Part shown: piece after piece, positions 8,245 to 55,321 of the stretch
How the letters are laid out: every line of letters starts with the position of its first letter
Position numbering within the stretch: position 1 is the first letter of the stretch
IMG/VR virus record: IMGVR_UViG_3300047548_001236
Coordinates: 1 to 64,000 of that record
DNA: 64,000 nucleotides
Reading direction: 5' to 3' (one strand)
Translations under genes and position numbers: made by a program
Notes under the pieces: generated by a model
What the model saw: the letters and a program-made list of their open reading frames with translations, nothing else
What the model was told of the DNA's origin: nothing
Database searches by the model: none

Positions 8245-9036
8245 ATGTCTATTTATACACCTTATACCTATCTTATAGGATGGTCTTCAATAAGTAAATA
8301 TTATTATGGCGTCCGTTTTGCGAAAAACTGCCACCCAAGTGATTTGTGGGTGAAGTACTTCACCTCTTCCAAAACCGTAGCTGAATACCGTAAACTTTAC
8401 GGTGAGCCTGACGTGATTGAGGTTCGAAAAACATTCACAGATAAACACTCGGCAATTTTGTGGGAGGAGAGAGTGCTCCGAAAACTAGATATCAAGCACA
8501 ACGAAAAGATGCTTAATGCGAACGTTGCAGGCGCAATCGTGAAGAATCTTGATCACGCAAAAGGAAGACCGAGTAAACTCAGAGGCAGATATTGGACGGA
8601 GGAACAGAAAGCGAAGCTCAGAAAACCAAAATCAGTCCCTAGTCCGTTAAAGGGAAAACAATTGACAGATGAACATAAAGAGAAGCTCCGTGCTGCTAAA
8701 CGCGACTATAAACCGTGGAACGCTGGCAAAACTGGCCTACAGAGTCATTCGAGCGAAACAAAAGAAAAAATGCGGATGGCTAAGATCAAGTCAAAAGTCA
8801 TTATATTTTCAGAATGCCCTTGCTGTAAGGAAATAAAAGTTAAGCCAAATCAAACTTTCTGTAGCAATTCGTGTAGAGCGAAACACAACGCACAAAAATT
8901 ATCAGCTCAGGGAAAATTTGGATTTCAGAACAAGTCTAACCAAGATGCTGCGCAGTTAGCTAGAAGGCCCGTTGGGTTATACGGTGGAGCCCATACCGCA
9001 GACTCAATCAAGCAGCTAGGCGAACCTGTGGCTTGA
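8245..9036 (+). CDS. Homing endonuclease, GIY-YIG-like with NUMOD3 repeats
   Basis: YTYLIGW...YYYGVR, HSSETKEKMR repeats; late promoter TATAAATA at 8174-8181; antisense to its neighbours. Confidence 0.8.
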   Translation: MSIYTPYTYLIGWSSISKYYYGVRFAKNCHPSDLWVKYFTSSKTVAEYRKLYGEPDVIEVRKTFTDKHSAILWEERVLRKLDIKHNEKMLNANVAGAIVKNLDHAKGRPSKLRGRYWTEEQKAKLRKPKSVPSPLKGKQLTDEHKEKLRAAKRDYKPWNAGKTGLQSHSSETKEKMRMAKIKSKVIIFSECPCCKEIKVKPNQTFCSNSCRAKHNAQKLSAQGKFGFQNKSNQDAAQLARRPVGLYGGAHTADSIKQLGEPVA

Positions 9037-9336
9037 AATTATCGTTTGCAATGTTTGTTGCAGTTATTATTGTCTTCGCGGTAACGGCGCTTAGATCCCG
9101 GTAGCTCCATCCTGCCTAGTCCGCCTGTCGATCCTATTTCGAGCCCATCAAAGATACACTTGCTGATATCCTGTTAGATTTCAACTTGACCCACTACAGA
9201 TCAAAGTATCTAACACCGCTTCCGTTATCAGTCCGGTAGGTAGTTAACCTGTTTCCTTTGGCAAGTGTATCTATGGTGGACCCGCTGGGTACCGCCCCCA
9301 GGTCCAGAACGTGTTCAGTGAATATCATCACTACAA
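8962..9336 (-). ncRNA. ssrA: Circularly permuted (two-piece) tmRNA
   Basis: Acceptor piece ends GGGGGCGGTACCCAGCGGGTCCACCA (9274); intervening segment 9147-9273; coding piece starts GGGCTCGAAATAGGATCGAC (9146); tag ANDNFKPQVRLAA* (9008-9049); G3.U70 pair. Confidence 0.93.
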
Positions 9337-18569: not shown

Positions 18570-18674
18570 TGGTATCCCAGACAGGATTCGAACCTGCACC
18601 TACGTCGACTGATAACCAGCGGTAGGCCCTAGCTTTTTATGGCCCCGGTGTTTACCCACTTCCACCACTAGGAT
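18570..18674 (-). tRNA. Degenerate Leu-like tRNA with enlarged variable arm
   Basis: Acceptor, D and T arms and CCA intact; anticodon stem poorly paired. Confidence 0.5.
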
Positions 18675-18680
18675 ATTTTT

Positions 18681-18757
18681 TGGAGGTCGACCATGGACTT
18701 GAACCACGACCCCAGCTCTTGCAAGAGCTGTACATTAACCAATTTTGCTAATCGACC
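18681..18757 (-). tRNA. tRNA-Cys-like with 8-nt anticodon loop
   Basis: CAGCT-CTTGCAAG-AGCTG; U73; CCA. Confidence 0.7.
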
Positions 18758-20780: not shown

Positions 20781-20838
20781 CTTAGCTTCCTTTTCTGATT
20801 TGAATTTGATTGGTAGTCTGGTTCAATTCAGAAGGTCG

Positions 20839-21108
20839 CTAAGGAGGTACCCAGTCTTCGATGATGGCATGGTTATCCTCATCGATCGTCAACCGACACT
20901 TTTTAACCTTGATCGCGCCTTTCGTGTGCGGGTTATCTGGCGTCTGCTTGGTTGTCCAAGGCTTGTTACATTCTACGCTATTGCAATAGAACGACTGTCC
21001 CTTGGCTTTGAGCACCCACATCGGAATGCTAGAGTCTTCGAGGTGTTTTTTGTTGAAGTGGAATACAATATCATCACACCTCATATCAACCTAGAAAGTC
21101 ATAGTTTT
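20839..21108 (-). CDS. Hypothetical protein
   Basis: ORF with AAGG SD. Confidence 0.55.
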
Positions 21109-21237
21109 ACCCTTTCGTTTGTTACGTTTGTCGGATATGTGAACGCTCTCCGTTCGCGTTTCAGTAACCTTCTCCACTTAGCCTTGGGCTCATCCAGCAG
21201 AGTCGGTTTAGGCTGTCACATTCAGCACTGAAATCTA

Positions 21238-21313
21238 TGGCGGCCCTGGTGGGACTCGAACCCACGACCATGAGTTTTAGAGGCTCTAGCTCTACCATCT
21301 GAGCTACAAGGCC
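21238..21313 (-). tRNA. Amber suppressor tRNA (anticodon CUA)
   Basis: Loop CT-CTA-AA, canonical D/T arms, G73, CCA; two mismatches in anticodon stem. Confidence 0.8.
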
Positions 21314-21694
21314 GTATGCTGGTTTTGAGGAGGATCCAGCAACCTCACTAATAGCAGAATCGCACGCATTGATTCCGAGTCGCCAGACATTGCGATGTGG
21401 CCATTGTAGTTATTACCTACAAATCATGGGCGATGAACACCCGCCATATATTCTGGTCGAACAAGACCTAAAAGCGAGCCTCTAGGCTGGTTGGGCTTTG
21501 ACATAATTTCACCACGTTTGAAAGCAGGGTGGCTTGTGGCTACTTTAGTGTCATACCAACCAAACGCTGATTTTATCATTCTTGGTTGCAGTATCCACCC
21601 AAATTCTTCGACCTTTCACCGGTTAAGGTCGACTGTTGCTTTCACGGGCTCCCCTGAGCGGACAGGGTAAAGCAAGCAATCAGATTCTTAAAAA

Positions 21695-21806
21695 CAGATT
21701 GAGATTTCTACTTCTTTGATAGACCAGGAAATCGAAGACTGGGGTGACCGGTGAGCCGGAGCTCTGGTGGTCGTGCTATGTTTCTTAGTTGCGGAACACT
21801 CAATCT
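21695..21806 (-). ncRNA. CCGCAA-stem cassette 2 (non-tRNA cargo)
   Basis: AGATTGAG/CTCAATCT stem plus TGTTCCGCAA. Confidence 0.55.
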
Positions 21807-21842
21807 TGAATACGTTATACTATACTCTTTAGTGAGAAACAA

Positions 21843-22020
21843 CAGGATCATTTTACGTGCTCTACTAACTGAGCTACTCTCCCATCAAAGATACACCGTT
21901 TTTACAGATTTCCCTCTTTCGAGTAACGCACCTCTGTCGATGTATCTGTGGTGGGAGAGGGTGGATTTGCACCACCGACCACGGCTTTATCGGAGCAAAA
22001 AGATTGCTGAATTGATCCTT
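21843..22020 (-). tRNA. Circularly permuted tRNA-Ile(GAU) in CAGCAA cassette 3
   Basis: 3' half 21949-21996 transcribed before 5' half 21856-21883; rejoins to 76 nt with CGGCT/AGCCG stem and loop CCGATAA. Confidence 0.85.
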
Positions 22021-22031
22021 TTGAAATTATT

Positions 22032-22157
22032 TCAGGTTCGCCTTTTACGTTGACCTAACTACTTAGTCGATCACCCCGTAGTGAAGTTGGCGGGGTGAGC
22101 AGGACTTGCACCTGCATCTACGGCTTGACATGCATAATTGTATGCTGAACCGAACCT
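22032..22157 (-). tRNA. Circularly permuted tRNA-Asp(GUC) in cassette 4
   Basis: 3' half 22088-22133, 5' half 22048-22077; stem ACGGC/GCCGT, loop ATGTCAA, G73. Confidence 0.85.
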
Positions 22158-22164
22158 TTTAATC

Positions 22165-22568: not shown

Positions 22569-23030
22569 CTATTTATTGCAAAGCTCACGAGGCAGCAGGT
22601 CGAATTCAGGAAGATAATCGTTGAAATAACGACGGTAGCTTCCGACGACTGACTTGATCTTACCCTTGACCTTGCGACGCTCTTCAACGTTGCGAATACT
22701 GTTCATCAGGTTGCCGAGCAGATGACGAACCGAAGCAATGTGAGCCTGTTTGTACAGCCTCTCTGCTTCAACCTTGGAGTAACCACGTTCGACAACATAA
22801 TTGACGAAGCAACGATTACCACGTTCTTCATTGCACTTCCGGCACATCACGAACATGTTGTCCGTAGTATCTGGACCACCGTACGACTTTGCTACCATGT
22901 GGTCAACAGTCGCCATGTTGCGTTGCACTTTATCAGGATTTGCTTTCCAGACCAACTGAACGTTGCAGCAAGGGCAACGACGAAGTCCGCTTTCGAAAGC
23001 ATTCTGCAGGGCTGTTTTCTTGAAGCACAT
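22569..23030 (-). CDS. HNH endonuclease
   Basis: CPCC...ATVDHMVAKSYGG...NMFVMCRKCNEERG. Confidence 0.85.
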   Translation of the reverse strand: MCFKKTALQNAFESGLRRCPCCNVQLVWKANPDKVQRNMATVDHMVAKSYGGPDTTDNMFVMCRKCNEERGNRCFVNYVVERGYSKVEAERLYKQAHIASVRHLLGNLMNSIRNVEERRKVKGKIKSVVGSYRRYFNDYLPEFDLLPRELCNK

Positions 23031-23399: not shown

Positions 23400-24355
23400 T
23401 CTACTTGCAACGGGGAGTACGAGGGGATTTGCACCAGGCCCCTGAACCTTCTCCTCTTTTCAGCTCCTCAGGGAAGGAGCCTACTTCTGCACCTTGCTTA
23501 CTCCGCTCTGGAAGTAGAATATTGTTGCGGGTGAGATTACCCCGTATTGTGAGCGCCTTTCCGATGTACCACATCCCTTGCGAGGAGTGTTGTCGGGTTA
23601 TCCACAAGAGTCTTTCGATCATCTTGTATCGCTCAGTGCTGCCGTTTTTGAGGTCTGGCTGTTGACCTGTCGCATGTTACTACTCGTCCGTCTTTCCTAC
23701 GCCTGCCTTGCGAGCAGCTCAGAGGCGCTAACCTCCTACGTGATCATTCTGAACAACTACTCTAGCCTTGCGAGCCTTCGTAGGCCTGATTATCTTTCGA
23801 CTCAGGCATTAAGCACCTTTCGTAACACACCGGAGCAGACTTTCGCTTTTTGAATCTATGTTGCTTTGAACCAAAATCAAACGCTAATTTAATAGCTGCG
23901 AACCTACTGAGAAGTGCTGCTCCAGTTGCTCCACACCTTGTTAGATGCAGAATACCACACTCCTCCTGTCTTTCTCCTTGCGGGATACTCAACGTCACTT
24001 CACGAATCCGGTGTGACCCTTCCTCGTTGATGATCCTACACCGCCCTTCTACGCGAATAGTCGGACTATGTAGACACCTGTTGGACTTTTCCATTCGTTA
24101 GTTTGGCTGAAAACTGTTTGGGCGCCAACCCTCTTACACCTCACCGATCGGCTCTGGTGCTATCCTTTCGGACAGTCTTCCTAACTTACTGGATACCTCC
24201 TAGCTTCTAAGGCTAGAAGGGACTTGCTTTCGGTTTAATCCGAGTCAAGTCTATCCCAGGCTTGTATGAATGGACCATTTTACTGGCGCAGGTATGTAGG
24301 AATCCCTGCTTTGGGTGTGTTACCACACTTACCCTGACGACGTCATACCGCCATT
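23400..24355 (-). ncRNA. Candidate large structured ncRNA (about 950 nt)
   Basis: No credible ORF, many hairpins, downstream of a promoter and boxA within the tRNA island. Confidence 0.45.
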
Positions 24356-27947: not shown

Positions 27948-28078
27948 GTGTATTCTCCGTATGTTTTGTATATGTGCGTATATTTTTGTATGAACAATGT
28001 GTAGGCACGATGTAGTAATGCGTTCACAACACTATTTATACACGGTTACGCATACGATACAGCACCTACGAAGAAAAA

Positions 28079-28177
28079 TATCCTGGTTGGACTCGAACCA
28101 ACGGCCTGCGCTTTATTCCCAGCGTTTGGGTCCTTCACCATGAGGGAGCACTGCTCTACCGACTGAGCTACAGGATG
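28079..28177 (-). ncRNA. tRNA-like RNA with 34-nt anticodon loop, no CCA
   Basis: Canonical D and T arms; two hairpins in the anticodon loop. Confidence 0.6.
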
Positions 28178-31631: not shown

Positions 31632-31712
31632 TGGTGCTGATGGAGGGACTCGAACCCTCAAAAACTCACTTTCTGAAAATGAGATGTCTACCTGAAATTG
31701 CATCACATCAGC
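31632..31712 (-). tRNA. tRNA-Leu(CAG), short variable region
   Basis: Loop TTCAGAA. Confidence 0.8.
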
Positions 31713-31797: not shown

Positions 31798-32523
31798 TTA
31801 TATGGTGCGGCCGAAGTTCCACCCGTCAGGGAGAGTGTCTCCTTTAGCCATTTTCCTATTGTTGTGACCGTCTGTTATCCAAACAGAGTTCTCTGTTTTT
31901 CCACGCACCCAACCTTCTGGTATATCGGAATCGTTAGTTAGACGTTTATTCGTTTTACCGTCGGTTATCCACATAAACGGTTGTCTCTTTCCTTTATTCC
32001 GCTCTTTAGAGCGGTAATTTGAATCTTTCCATTTCTGAGAAATACTTTCTGATATTTTCTGTTTATGTTCTTCGGTTTTTGCCACACCTTTGTGGAGTTT
32101 GCTATTGTGTTCAGCTATACGCTTTTTGTGATCAACCGTCAACTTGCGCCCAACACCGTGCTTATTCCCTTTCATGGCGCGTGAAATAAGTTTTTTTGTT
32201 GATTCGTTATGTGTTCTACCCTCGAACGTCAACCCATTGATCTGTTTACCGCCCAGACCACCCCCAACGCAAATGTTATATGTATCAGAACGCGCGACAA
32301 AATCTTCGTTAACTATTTCTCGTTCTTTTTGAATTGCAGCGTCAAGAGTATCGAAGCGGTACATTACTTCCTTAGAAAAGGTGTCTCTACCATACTTTAC
32401 AATAGCCCTTTTTAATAGTTTTCCGGAACCCATATATCCGTCATCAACATCGTCGGTTTTATGAAGTCCAATGTATATTTTACCATTAGCCAAATTAGTA
32501 ACTTTGTAAATGGTGTAATCCAT
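31798..32523 (-). CDS. Seg-like GIY-YIG homing endonuclease with NUMOD3
   Basis: TIYKVTNLANGKIYIG, YMGSG, HNESTKKLIS. Confidence 0.9.
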   Translation of the reverse strand: MDYTIYKVTNLANGKIYIGLHKTDDVDDGYMGSGKLLKRAIVKYGRDTFSKEVMYRFDTLDAAIQKEREIVNEDFVARSDTYNICVGGGLGGKQINGLTFEGRTHNESTKKLISRAMKGNKHGVGRKLTVDHKKRIAEHNSKLHKGVAKTEEHKQKISESISQKWKDSNYRSKERNKGKRQPFMWITDGKTNKRLTNDSDIPEGWVRGKTENSVWITDGHNNRKMAKGDTLPDGWNFGRTI

Positions 32524-35867: not shown

Positions 35868-35943
35868 TGGTCGGGGTGGCCAGACTCGAACTGACGACTT
35901 TTAGTACCCAAAACTAACGCTCTACCACCTGAGCTACACCCCG
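35868..35943 (-). tRNA. tRNA-Pro(UGG)
   Basis: Loop TTTGGGT. Confidence 0.9.
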
Positions 35944-36323
35944 TAATGTACTTTTCTATGACAGTTGGAACACAAGACTATACACTTCTGTGCTTCCTCG
36001 TAAAAGAGGCGCCGTCCTCTTGCATCGCTCGGATGCAAGTCTTTAACGGTAGGATCGAGATGGTGCAGATCAAGTACCGCAGGGTGATTCTCACCACAGT
36101 GAGCACATCCTCTCGATACCTTATACTCTCTCACCTCATCGGCAAATTTATCTCGTGCCTTTTTACGTATTACGTCATACTTCTGTTTCTTTTTAGCCTC
36201 AGATAAAGCACTAAATGCGTTTGAGCACTTCTTACAATACCGTTGATAGCCATCAGGCGACTTCGCTTGTTTGTAGAAGTTACCCAACGGTTTAGTTTGT
36301 TGGCACTGTAGACACGTTTTCAT
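35934..36323 (-). CDS. HNH endonuclease whose stop codon lies inside tRNA-Pro
   Basis: CAHCGE..LDLHHLDP...KCIVLCSNCHRKVH; TATAAATA upstream. Confidence 0.88.
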   Translation of the reverse strand: MKTCLQCQQTKPLGNFYKQAKSPDGYQRYCKKCSNAFSALSEAKKKQKYDVIRKKARDKFADEVREYKVSRGCAHCGENHPAVLDLHHLDPTVKDLHPSDARGRRLFYEEAQKCIVLCSNCHRKVHYGV

Positions 36324-41674: not shown

Positions 41675-41800
41675 TGGCGACCCCGGTAGGACTCGAACCT
41701 ACAACCTACTGATTAGATCGTGCCTTAGAAGATTCGCACTTCACTGGGCTTCCATACCCTCAGGCCAAGTCAGTTGCTCTATCCATTGAGCTACGGAGTC
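41675..41800 (-). tRNA. tRNA-Arg(UCU) interrupted by a 50-nt insert in the anticodon
   Basis: Removing 41717-41766 restores a 76-nt cloverleaf with loop CTTCTAA. Confidence 0.85.
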
Positions 41801-47733: not shown

Positions 47734-48630
47734 CTAGCGCCCTTCATATTTCTCTAATACTGCTTTCAGCTCTGCAATCATTCGGTCGACTGGAACCTCG
47801 CGTTTGACAGCATTGTCCAGAGAACCGTAATGATGCTCTAGGCAATTCATGAGAAGCTCTTTGACTGCTTCCTCGTCAGGGGCGTGCTGCAAGGTCGACT
47901 TGACGTACAGCTCTTCAAGATGCCTTTCAGCTTCGTTGAACCAATTGCGTAGCTTCTCCTCAGTCCATTCCCCACGACGGATCGATTTCAGGATCTCACG
48001 ATTCGCTTCGATATCAAGATCATGCTCGACAAGGATCTGCTGAGCTTCAAGAGCAAGTCGAACAACGTGATACGCAAACTTCACATCATAGCCAAACTCG
48101 TCGATTGAAGCCTGACGCTTTGGGTTCGAGGCATTAGCTTTCGTGCCGATCTTGTGAAGCTGAGCGTACGCGTATCCACGGAACTTGTGGTAGCTACCCT
48201 TATGGAGGAACAACTTGCGATTGTCTCGAACCATTTGCCCAATCTTCGATGCATACAGAACGCACCGTTGTGGGACAAACAAACTGTCGCACATGTTCGG
48301 GTTGTTTTCCATACACAGGTGGAAGTACTTCACGATCGAATAGATACTGAAATCGTATTCCTGACGAGCCTCAGCATCCATGATGTGGTGTTCCTGATAT
48401 TGTTCGAATCGCTGGATCTGTCGACCGAACCCAAGGATTTCTCCTCTTAGATGAGGGAAGACATCTTCCTTAGGCGGAATACAGAAACCATACACGTCCA
48501 TATCAGACGTATCGCTAGACACGCCATAGGCAACAGAACCCATGATCACCTCATAGTGAACATTCTGAGGCAGCCACTTAGGAGGAGCGATGAGCCCCTT
48601 TTGCTTCATTAGTTGAACACGAGATGCCAT
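47734..48630 (-). CDS. Pol-beta superfamily nucleotidyltransferase
   Basis: GSVAYG...SDMDVYG; NPN; YDVKFAYH..RL. Confidence 0.88.
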   Translation of the reverse strand: MASRVQLMKQKGLIAPPKWLPQNVHYEVIMGSVAYGVSSDTSDMDVYGFCIPPKEDVFPHLRGEILGFGRQIQRFEQYQEHHIMDAEARQEYDFSIYSIVKYFHLCMENNPNMCDSLFVPQRCVLYASKIGQMVRDNRKLFLHKGSYHKFRGYAYAQLHKIGTKANASNPKRQASIDEFGYDVKFAYHVVRLALEAQQILVEHDLDIEANREILKSIRRGEWTEEKLRNWFNEAERHLEELYVKSTLQHAPDEEAVKELLMNCLEHHYGSLDNAVKREVPVDRMIAELKAVLEKYEGR

Positions 48631-52891: not shown

Positions 52892-53299
52892 CTACCGGTA
52901 GCGCTGGACGTTCACACCAAGTTTTTGCAATAATGTTATCCCTGCAGCGTCACGGTACATTTCATCGTAGTACACCTCTTTAATTCCAGCTGTGTACATC
53001 TGCTTGGCACACTCAACACATGGGGAATGCGTAACGAAAAACACCGCCCCTTCCGAACTTTCAGTGCACTTTGCTAGCTTAGCAATGCAGTTGGCCTCGG
53101 CATGCAATACTTCGATTTTTGTCTTACCGTTTTCGTCCTCACATGTATTGTCAAACCCTGGAGGGGTTCCATTGTACCCTATCGAAAGGATTCTTCCATC
53201 TTTAACAGCTATCGCGCCTACTTTAAGCCTCTGTGCCTTTGACAGAGAGGCAAAAACATGAGCCACTTGCATATAAGCATCTTTCATTTCTTGCTTCAT
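52892..53299 (-). CDS. cd: dCMP deaminase
   Basis: GYNG, HAEAN, SPCVECAK. Confidence 0.92.
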   Translation of the reverse strand: MKQEMKDAYMQVAHVFASLSKAQRLKVGAIAVKDGRILSIGYNGTPPGFDNTCEDENGKTKIEVLHAEANCIAKLAKCTESSEGAVFFVTHSPCVECAKQMYTAGIKEVYYDEMYRDAAGITLLQKLGVNVQRYR

Positions 53300-54165: not shown

Positions 54166-54482
54166 AGTAGACCTCCTATTGAACTCTACCACTATTTATA
54201 TTTTTGTTCATCTCGGCATGTATAACAAGACTACCTTGATCAAGCCACCAAAGTGATGGCCTTATTAAGGTAGTCTTTCTTCAACTGAACCTTGTCCTGA
54301 CGGCGAATCGCCTTCTTGGACTTCTGGTGAACGCCGCCACCGTTACGGTTGATCAGATGCTGAACGAACGGGTTGCGTTCCTTCGGCGCTTGTTTCTTCT
54401 TGGTCTTCATCTTGTGCCTCCACATAGAAATGCTTGCTGTTGTACACCACATACAGCAAGCATATGTATCTTTCAACAGGGC

Positions 54483-54827
54483 CTAGAGTAGTTTCAGATT
54501 GCCGGTGATTGGTTGAAGGTTTTCGTGCGTGTCTGGCCCAACAGCAATGCACGTATTGGTCGGAACGCCGTTGAATACGGTTAGTCCCGAGTCGGTGATC
54601 AATTCAGCTATCAGACCAGCTTCGCGCGCTTTGTTATAGACCTCCAGCAATTCTTCTTCACTATTGACTCCTACAGCAATTTTTGTGAAAAGTCCACTGA
54701 GCCATTCTTTCACACGAGGATCATCCATATGAAGTAGAGTTGCTTTCATTGATGCATGTGCACCTTGTGCGATCTCTTTGCCTCTAGGCATCTTAAGATC
54801 TTTACGCATCACAATAATCTGTTTCAT
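54483..54827 (-). CDS. pth2: Peptidyl-tRNA hydrolase, Pth2 type
   Basis: KQIIVMRKDLKM..GK..AQGAHA; DSGLT; TCIAVGP. Confidence 0.92.
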   Translation of the reverse strand: MKQIIVMRKDLKMPRGKEIAQGAHASMKATLLHMDDPRVKEWLSGLFTKIAVGVNSEEELLEVYNKAREAGLIAELITDSGLTVFNGVPTNTCIAVGPDTHENLQPITGNLKLL

Positions 54828-55321
54828 TTTGCCTCTCTTACACCGTATCGCAAACGGTATTGGGTTTTGTATGGATACCACATGCCATGCATCGGTTTGA
54901 ACGTCGTTGGGTCGGTATAGAACCGTTCGACGGTCCGTTCAGCTTCCAGATTATCCACATATTCCTTGAGAACCATGTACAGAGGACCTGTGTTCGACAT
55001 TGCAAACAAATGGTCTTCTGTAGGCATGGCTACCGTTCTAGCCATGTACAAATTATCGTGGAAAATTGCAGTGGGTCCTGTCATGAAAGCCTTTTGAGCT
55101 TTCGCAAAGCGCTCACACACATCATCGAATTCCGGAGGCTTTCGAGTTACAGACCAAGCGTTTGGGGTGGAAGGGGTTTCAACAGCGAGGTGTCGATCCA
55201 TCACAGACTTCCACTCGTCATACGACGTTGTGATGGTGCACTCAAAGCCGTTCAGTGGTGTATCTTCGAACAGGCTGTCCTTACGAGAGGGGATTACCTG
55301 CACACTTTCAATTTGCATCAT
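54824..55321 (-). CDS. Hypothetical protein
   Basis: ORF in operon. Confidence 0.55.
   Translation of the reverse strand: MMQIESVQVIPSRKDSLFEDTPLNGFECTITTSYDEWKSVMDRHLAVETPSTPNAWSVTRKPPEFDDVCERFAKAQKAFMTGPTAIFHDNLYMARTVAMPTEDHLFAMSNTGPLYMVLKEYVDNLEAERTVERFYTDPTTFKPMHGMWYPYKTQYRLRYGVREAK

Follow-up and report, generated by a model that had tools for sequence, protein, structure and literature searches.

The bldA tRNA-Leu(UAA) of Streptomyces controls UUA-containing regulators such as adpA. In prfB, an early in-frame stop codon acts as a sensor of termination capacity in autoregulation; and the lambda bar minigenes illustrate, together with Pth, how very short, stop-ended ORFs promote peptidyl-tRNA drop-off. 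In TAG-recoded (code 15) crAss-like and Lak phages a phage-encoded tRNA-CUA reads UAG, for which a role in timing control has been proposed (bioRxiv 10.1101/2021.08.26.457843; PMC9523058), and both standard-code phages bearing suppressors and a model of recoding have been described (bioRxiv 10.1101/2021.08.26.457843). The Xanthomonas jumbo phage XacN1 carries two CUA tRNAs in each terminal repeat (Yoshikawa et al. 2018, PMC5852040); in silico read-through of 18 of its TAG stops led its authors to no target (PMC5852040), and none was reported for the single CUA tRNA of Ralstonia phage RsoM2USA (PMC8504454). Engineered circuits, namely amber-suppressor AND gates and leak dampeners, place an amber codon early in a gene, which is then on only when a suppressor tRNA is made alongside it (PMC7969014, PMC11669171).

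The locus considered here lies within a 64-kb stretch of DNA (termed here the window) that comprises the first 64 kb of a jumbo phage genome of 282,855 bp (IMG/VR virus record G000, termed here G0). It consists of a tRNA gene with anticodon CUA and, directly downstream, an ORF whose fourth codon is TAG--an arrangement that probably constitutes a two-part cassette, in which the suppressor tRNA would gate translation of its neighbour. As in the code 15 phages, a phage tRNA-CUA would read UAG; unlike those phages, in which many genes contain many in-frame TAGs and coding density increases under code 15, G0 uses the standard code and the cassette involves one TAG at codon 4 of a single adjacent gene. 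As with bldA (see also PMC10732093), the availability of a dedicated tRNA would control a few genes containing its rare codon, but bldA reads a sense codon in distant genes, whereas the cassette places a stop codon, as a gate at codons 3-5, within a neighbouring target. With prfB and bar it shares the early in-frame stop and the very short ORF--and a sister cassette would gate a PTH2-like hydrolase--though, unlike prfB, it involves no frameshift. The engineered amber gates are synthetic; the phage cassette would be their natural and widespread counterpart. Searches of open-access papers and bioRxiv preprints found no description of a suppressor tRNA paired with an amber-gated neighbour, and the cassette is, as far as was found, an undescribed variant of tRNA-dependent translational control.

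The CUA tRNA and its relatives

The tRNA gene occupies positions 21238-21313 on the minus strand, an assignment based on ARAGORN, Rfam, the sequence itself, its homologues and covariation. ARAGORN reports a 76-nt tRNA with anticodon cta at position 34, and Rfam family RF00005 matches it with 60.9 bits, against a gathering score of 29. The predicted cloverleaf has a 7-bp acceptor stem, a D arm (GCUC/GAGC) with GG in its loop, a T arm (GUGGG-UUCGAGU-CCCAC), a 5-nt variable loop, discriminator G73 and an encoded CCA; its anticodon loop, CUCUAAA (C32-U33-C34-U35-A36-A37-A38), has the seven nucleotides, the U33 and the purine at position 37 that are looked for in a suppressor. The preliminary description, which had recognized an amber suppressor-type tRNA with good D and T arms and a CCA end, was thus correct on this point. 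ARAGORN labels the gene 'Pyl' because of the anticodon alone. A pylT tRNA has a short D loop without GG, a 3-nt variable loop and an elongated anticodon stem; the canonical D loop with GG, the 5-nt variable loop and the TTCGA T loop of the window tRNA depart from this architecture.

Three Watson-Crick pairs (G28-C42, A29-U41 and G30-C40) make up the entire anticodon stem, A27/A43 and C31/A39 being mismatched. This weakness, along with a tRNA body that resembles tRNAs for Lys, Arg(UCU), Met and Gly(UCC), is what might be expected if the tRNA had no decoding role at all, that is, if it were a decoy or substitute directed against anticodon nucleases of the host or against further defences that target tRNAs, or else a degenerating copy. 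Such an interpretation is extremely improbable given how the molecule has been conserved. Among 14 related CUA tRNAs, 15 of the 21 cloverleaf pairs show compensatory changes (a level reached in none of 500 shuffles) and pairing is complete (100%) in the acceptor, D and T stems; the loop CUCUAAA does not vary among all eight aligned CUA tRNAs that lie beside genes of the family described below, despite their quite different bodies. Moreover, a decoy could do without a constant amber anticodon and without an amber codon in the adjacent gene.

The origin of the tRNA offers little indication of the amino acid with which it would be charged. A recent paralogue is rejected, the best other G0 tRNA matching at only 56 of 76 bases; the nearest phage paralogue of the body is a tRNA-Lys(UUU) of the Xanthomonas phage Xoo-sp13; and the cellular tRNAs that share the anticodon arm--Arg(UCU), Gly(UCC), Lys and Met--do so in similar numbers and with similar identity. 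The E. coli tRNA collection yielded nothing useful on ancestry. Assignment by descent was therefore abandoned, since the body is ambiguous among Lys, Arg(UCU), Met and Gly(UCC); the way CUA tRNAs are known to behave would suggest Lys or Gln, but only as a guess.

In GenBank the window tRNA is best matched by a tRNA of Xoo-sp13 that lacks annotation (84%) and by one annotated as 'tRNA-Sup' in XacN1. The anticodon arm, GAGC-CUCUAAA-ACUC with its C31/A39 mismatch, is identical in the window tRNA, both XacN1 copies, Xoo-sp13 and six IMG/VR loci (L044, L045_b, L047, L048_b, L049_b and L050), and the acceptor stems of the G0 and Xanthomonas phage CUA tRNAs differ from each other through compensatory changes. 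An exact-pattern search of IMG/VR found no near-identical tRNAs; relatives were retrieved with a looser pattern of the anticodon arm, and the further lineage members so obtained often stand in tandem with a second, unrelated CUA tRNA. (L045, L046, L048, which is genome G002, and L049 each carry two or three unrelated CUA tRNA types in tandem, all with the loop CUCUAAA; one of these types has a perfect GUCGA/UCGAC anticodon stem.) Judging from these alignments, the window tRNA is a new member of an XacN1-type suppressor lineage. The setting of 'tRNA-Sup' in XacN1 is alike as well: a homologous tRNA (84% identity) in a jumbo phage that uses the standard code and carries a large block of tRNA genes (PMC5852040).

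According to ARAGORN, G0 has 51 tRNA genes, every one of them on the minus strand and 38 of them inside the window. Several other elements occur among them. A GOLLD RNA (RF02032, 194.9 bits) lies inside the tRNA block at 23528-23965 on the minus strand, and a GOLLD RNA is also found close to the CUA tRNAs of XacN1; the contigs that match it in two metatranscriptomes from sediment have depths of 1240 and 2285, versus 24-43 for the neighbouring coding region. A permuted tmRNA (RF04321, 90.4 bits) without an ARAGORN call is located at 9008-9335 (minus strand); permuted tmRNAs are found close to the CUA tRNA in XacN1, Xoo-sp13, L044 and L049, and the tmRNA of G001 is one-piece. Directly upstream of the CUA tRNA is an ORF-free stretch of 851 nt (21314-22164, minus strand) whose predicted folding is much stronger than that of shuffles (z = -6.6); it contains T-arm, 3'-acceptor and CCA pieces, followed by a 5'-acceptor and D-arm piece, and has only a weak Rfam tmRNA match at 21875-21976. 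Its make-up suggests a tRNA-like (or tmRNA-like) element that is permuted or split. Four-base anticodons are reported by ARAGORN at 18681-18757 (tgca, minus strand) and at position 293620 of G001 (aaac, plus strand), possibly tRNAs with 8-nt loops. Over-long Rfam tRNA matches (32-58 bits) that lack an ARAGORN call, at 41678-41800, 28078-28177, 31635-31712 and 18573-18674 on the minus strand, may hold introns or insertions. Homing-endonuclease-like genes lie between the tRNA genes at 22569-23030, 31798-32523 and 35934-36323 (minus strand), one of the three being an HNH gene by Pfam, and one GIY-YIG-like and one HNH-like by motif only.

Genetic code and TAG stop codons

The G0 genome, which is rated 100% complete and has a G+C content of 45.4%, is best read in the standard code. 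With greedily assigned ORFs its coding density is 0.931 under the standard code versus 0.937 with TAG as sense, a gain that does not exceed the gain from taking TGA or TAA as sense; with a stricter, codon-usage-trained gene caller, coverage goes from 0.883 to 0.875 once TAG is sense. The comparison set consisted of the whole genomes of XacN1 and Xoo-sp13 and of the IMG/VR jumbo phages G001 (IMGVR_UViG_3300032132_000001) and G002, each of which has only about 13-48 proteins in common with G0. Against these four related phages, none of 54 conserved G0 segments contains an in-frame TAG flanked by aligned sequence--which agrees with the earlier statement that core genes are not interrupted by TAG--and the same holds for 52 conserved segments of G001. 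A TAG-recoded (code 15) phage is rejected for G0 on both grounds, namely the lack of a density benefit and the lack of in-frame TAGs in conserved segments. The neighbouring ORFs of related cassette loci, too, are largely in the standard code.

Among the 383 G0 genes called by the codon-usage-trained caller, 212 end in TGA, 149 in TAA and 22 in TAG. The TAG share of stops is 5.7% in G0, 3.4% in Xoo-sp13, 2.0% in XacN1 and 5.4% in G002. Depletion of TAG was considered as a signature of suppressor carriage and, within this comparison of suppressor-carrying phages, is seen in these four genomes, but it fails in G001. (The latter genome, of 395 kb, has two CUA tRNAs and a PTH2-like gene with an amber leader, reads as standard code and ends about 31% of its genes in TAG.) Because G001 keeps 31% TAG stops alongside two CUA tRNAs, TAG avoidance is unreliable as a signature, and suppression in that phage must therefore be weak or context-dependent.

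These figures bear on the possibility that the CUA tRNA is a general, low-level suppressor without a dedicated target, serving as insurance against amber nonsense mutations, as a step towards TAG recoding (the Borges model) or to overrun host UAG codons. The rarity of TAG as a stop in G0, Xoo-sp13, XacN1 and G002 would fit such a role, as would the published model and the standard-code phages that bear suppressors (bioRxiv 10.1101/2021.08.26.457843); the tmRNA in these phages could clear the non-stop products. Nevertheless, general suppression as the whole explanation seems unlikely: TAG makes up 31% of stops in G001, no in-frame TAG occurs in the roughly 50 conserved genes of either G0 or G001, and a strictly conserved, TAG-specific leader beside the tRNA in two unrelated families is left unexplained. 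General suppression is compatible with the gated cassette, the two not being mutually exclusive.

A second possibility is programmed read-through at the C-terminus, in which the tRNA would extend TAG-ended genes--pth2, cd, the nucleotidyltransferase and nucleases--into functional, longer isoforms. The preliminary description had listed genes that end in TAG and proposed regulated read-through. The gene calls agree for those at 47734 (nucleotidyltransferase), 52892 (cd), 54483 (pth2) and 41004 (nuclease); the listed ORF at 35934-36323 on the minus strand is likewise present, with an HNH-like Cys/His pattern, and its end at 35934 overlaps the 5' part of a tRNA-Pro. Of the 22 genes among 383 that end in TAG, 12 fall in the window (Fisher p = 0.0013), a clustering that is absent from XacN1 and Xoo-sp13, and two of the TAG-ended genes, pth2 (54483-54881) and a gp4-like gene (107098-107553), share their reading frame with the ORF that follows. 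What makes C-terminal extension very unlikely is the behaviour of homologues. For four G0 genes (the nucleotidyltransferase at 47734, cd at 52892, pth2 at 54483 and the gp4-like gene at 107098), the XacN1 and Xoo-sp13 homologues stop at the matching position but use TAA or TGA, and no conserved tail follows, contrary to the conserved extensions that had been envisaged. In all five genomes the lengths of read-through after TAG match those after TAA and TGA, with no signal of back-up stops or of long extensions, and the 18 TAG stops considered by the XacN1 authors revealed nothing (PMC5852040). Early matches that seemed to span TAGs turned out to be antisense shadows of opposite-strand genes, and an apparent 'extension' of the cd gene rested on a weak and unconvincing alignment. 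Regulated read-through thus survives in another form, as a probable gate at a conserved amber codon, codon 4 of the adjacent gene, and not as C-terminal extension of the listed genes. As to a counter to release-factor-related defence, which had been suggested alongside it, no RF-1-domain protein and no release-factor link was found in G0, which is evidence neither for nor against it.

Two of these genes have peculiarities of their own. The canonical PTH2 gene (PF01981, 107.7 bits; region 54240-54881, minus strand) ends in TAG in frame with a following ORF of 80 codons, which is very basic and matches no family, an arrangement not kept in XacN1 or Xoo-sp13; the notion that this ORF (54240-54476) is ArfA-like has no Pfam or PHROG support. 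Outside the window, in the region 106489-107553 (minus strand), is the TAG-ended gene that we take to encode a T4 gp4-like head completion protein; the start of the next gene lies two codons past its TAG in the same frame, and its relatives use TAA.

Amber leaders in two gene families

The preliminary description missed a feature of the ORF that directly follows the tRNA, namely a TAG, in frame, as its fourth codon. A spacer of 135 nt (21103-21237, minus strand) separates the 3' end of the tRNA from the ATG of a leader mini-ORF, and a Shine-Dalgarno-like AAGGG (21110-21114, minus strand) lies 7 nt ahead of that ATG. The leader (21091-21102, minus strand) reads ATG (21100-21102), ACT, TTC, TAG (21091-21093), and its TAG is in frame with the ORF body (20842-21090, minus strand), which begins GTT GAT ATG (21082-21084) and encodes an 81-residue all-beta domain with the motif FHFNKKHLEDSSIPMW; nine codons separate the TAG from the FHF of this motif. 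Sites of the form SD-ATG-(1-4 codons)-TAG-long ORF number only three in the whole 283-kb genome, one of them being that directly after the CUA tRNA; simple arithmetic gives a probability of about 0.002 that one of three such sites would lie by chance in the 300 nt downstream of the tRNA. At the end of the domain a second TAG (20839-20841) is followed by 18 sense codons up to a TAA (20782-20784), this segment spanning 20782-20841 on the minus strand. The closest relative (L289) has a TAA after the matching last residue (...EDWAPP), and therefore the second TAG of G0 sits at the true stop position; the 18-codon stretch, which shares sequence with the SD of the gene that follows, may be a minor tail produced by read-through.

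The body of the G0 protein has no Pfam or PHROG match. An AF2 model is a confident all-beta domain (pLDDT 90.4), for which no significant fold relatives were found in the PDB (best VIA Z 3.4; best Foldseek E 0.085) and whose neighbours in the structure atlas are viral hypothetical proteins. Long homologues have in addition a ferredoxin-like (ACT/RRM-like) C-terminal domain, itself with weak matches (Z about 5), and an acidic tail. Sequencing runs from freshwater, sediment and wastewater contain related or nearly identical DNA. A relative with 90-92% identity is represented in two metatranscriptomes from sediment by contigs that span 20396/20469-21212, that is, the gated ORF and the next gene; these contigs stop 26 nt short of the tRNA 3' end, though contig ends are only suggestive and cannot prove transcript ends or levels.

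The leader is best understood by comparing the G0 protein with its family, termed here FHFNKKH after a motif that in G0 reads FHFNKKHLED. The family has many members: the 180-residue homologue L297 has at least 1499 related protein clusters, and 400 IMG/VR stretches encode relatives. The leader was compared in 46 distinct loci. A TAG stands 9-10 codons ahead of the motif in all 46, and TAA or TGA in none; an in-frame ATG is present 1-6 codons upstream of the TAG in 44, mostly as SD-ATG-NNN-TAG. A CUA tRNA lies upstream on the same strand within 2.5 kb, mostly 127-426 nt away, in 33 of the 46 loci, the other 13 having none within the fetched flank, and CUA is the anticodon of 62 of the 67 tRNAs found. 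For the closest relatives of the G0 protein the association is complete: all 14 IMG/VR loci have a CUA tRNA upstream on the same strand, and of the four sequence groups into which they fall, three carry leaders of the form M-x-(x)-TAG, most of them without a start codon past the TAG (L289, L297 and L302, for example, have no ATG between the TAG and the domain). In the remaining subgroup (L293/L294) the TAG is lost and the CUA tRNA is kept. Among cultured phages, Rhizobium phage RHph_I1_18 has an unannotated ORF with an M-S-E-F-M-TAG leader beside a tRNA(cta); in Atu_ph07 and Phosso the FHFNKKH domain is fused behind another N-terminal part, has no TAG and is located two genes after a PTH2-like gene. 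Gene callers place the starts of FHFNKKH proteins at internal codons, which fits an unrecognized TAG leader. The gene neighbourhoods of the cassette include no constant partner.

A second, unrelated gene has the same kind of leader. In G001, L044 and L050 a PTH2-like domain is encoded downstream of a CUA tRNA, in a frame that is entered through a TAG and has no other start codon; the leaders are M-P-D-T-TAG, M-K-A-TAG and M-K-S-TAG, and that of G002 is M-C-L-TAG. This family, which includes XacN1, Xoo-sp13, G001 and G002, is related to phrog_1866. The homologous gene of XacN1 and Xoo-sp13 has, upstream of its annotated start and in the same reading frame, the sequence SD-ATG-AAG-(AAG)-TAG followed by four codons; unlike in G0, this gene is far from the tRNA, whereas the gated gene of G0 encodes a different protein directly beside it. 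No PTH2-like gated gene was found in G0, which has only its canonical pth2 (54483-54881). From an alignment of the domain (A3), 80 IMG/VR loci were obtained; the nearest in-frame upstream stop is TAG in 64, TGA in nine and TAA in seven. The TAG precedes the domain by 0-9 codons in all but four of the 64, mostly as SD-ATG-NNN-TAG. A CUA tRNA is present in 59 of the 80 loci and lacking within the fetched flank of the other 21; CUA is by far the commonest anticodon (62 of 206 tRNAs), and 45 of 60 distinct CUA tRNA sequences have the loop CUCUAAA.

A mini-ORF in this position could instead act by itself, through termination and re-initiation or through RF1-dependent stalling, with the CUA tRNA a mere passenger. 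Certain features of the loci would allow this: the TAG of most FHFNKKH loci is followed directly by ATT, ATC or ATA, of which ATT is a rare start codon, and in G0, XacN1 and Xoo-sp13 an ATG lies 2-4 codons past the TAG. Re-initiation, however, could use any stop codon, and the stop is TAG in all 110 leader-type loci (46 plus 64); nor would a passenger account for the prevalence of anticodon CUA in both families (62/67 and 62/206 tRNAs), and PTH2-like genes have no start-like codon directly behind their TAG. A leader that works independently of the tRNA is, on this evidence, quite improbable.

A candidate amber gate

At the level of sequence, then, the in-frame TAG and the tRNA are established, and so is the fact that both they and their linkage are conserved in two unrelated protein families. 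From these we infer expression of the cassette, charging of the tRNA, actual read-through and a purpose for the gate. In the proposed mechanism, ribosomes would start at the SD-preceded ATG at 21102, translate three codons and meet UAG. In the absence of the suppressor, RF1 would terminate translation, releasing a tripeptide; in the presence of charged tRNA-CUA, an amino acid would be inserted at a non-conserved leader position, and the ribosome would continue into the FHFNKKH-domain protein. The neighbour's output would thereby depend on how much of the phage tRNA is present and in what functional state, or on how it competes with RF1. The gate might serve as a timer, as a means of coupling dose to tRNA supply, or as a sensor of tRNA integrity, of termination status or of RF1 competition. 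Because the TAG lies within a non-conserved leader, the inserted residue should not matter, and its identity is probably unimportant; this indifference fits the free variation of the acceptor stem and discriminator while the loop CUCUAAA stays fixed. A link between the cassette and peptidyl-tRNA drop-off or translation quality control, hinted at by the PTH2-like product and the tmRNA, is speculation by analogy.

Several observations count against the cassette. The G0 ORF has an ATG (21082-21084) two codons past the leader TAG, so that a start codon does stand between TAG and domain--as is also the case in the PTH2-like gene of XacN1 and Xoo-sp13--and the protein could therefore be made without suppression. 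Likewise adverse are the TAG-less subgroup L293/L294, the loci without a tRNA, the 31% TAG stops of G001, the weak anticodon stem of the G0 tRNA and the failure of the gated protein to match any family or fold. A gated cassette nevertheless seems to us the likely reading of the G0 locus. Its extension to many phages is one towards which we incline only slightly: a private tRNA-CUA would be selected to open one ATG-x-TAG neighbour (an FHFNKKH or a PTH2-like gene) in standard-code genomes, much as a key opens an 'amber lock', the pair operating as an AND gate or as a sensor of tRNA versus RF1.

If the broader proposal is true, it would explain the orphan suppressor tRNAs of XacN1-like and other phages, and such pairs may seed full TAG recoding. 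Published reports have repeatedly left the suppressor tRNAs of standard-code phages without a target, explicitly so for XacN1 in 2018; the cassette offers them a concrete, testable job, one suggested by more than 100 loci in two families and open to bench experiments in the cultured carriers XacN1, Xoo-sp13 and Rhizobium phage RHph_I1_18. If confirmed, gene callers would be systematically missing or truncating such genes, and the FHFNKKH and PTH2-like proteins would be under an unusual form of phage control. More generally, the cassette would then represent a natural case of stop-codon-gated gene control by a dedicated tRNA, and a plausible first step towards TAG recoding.
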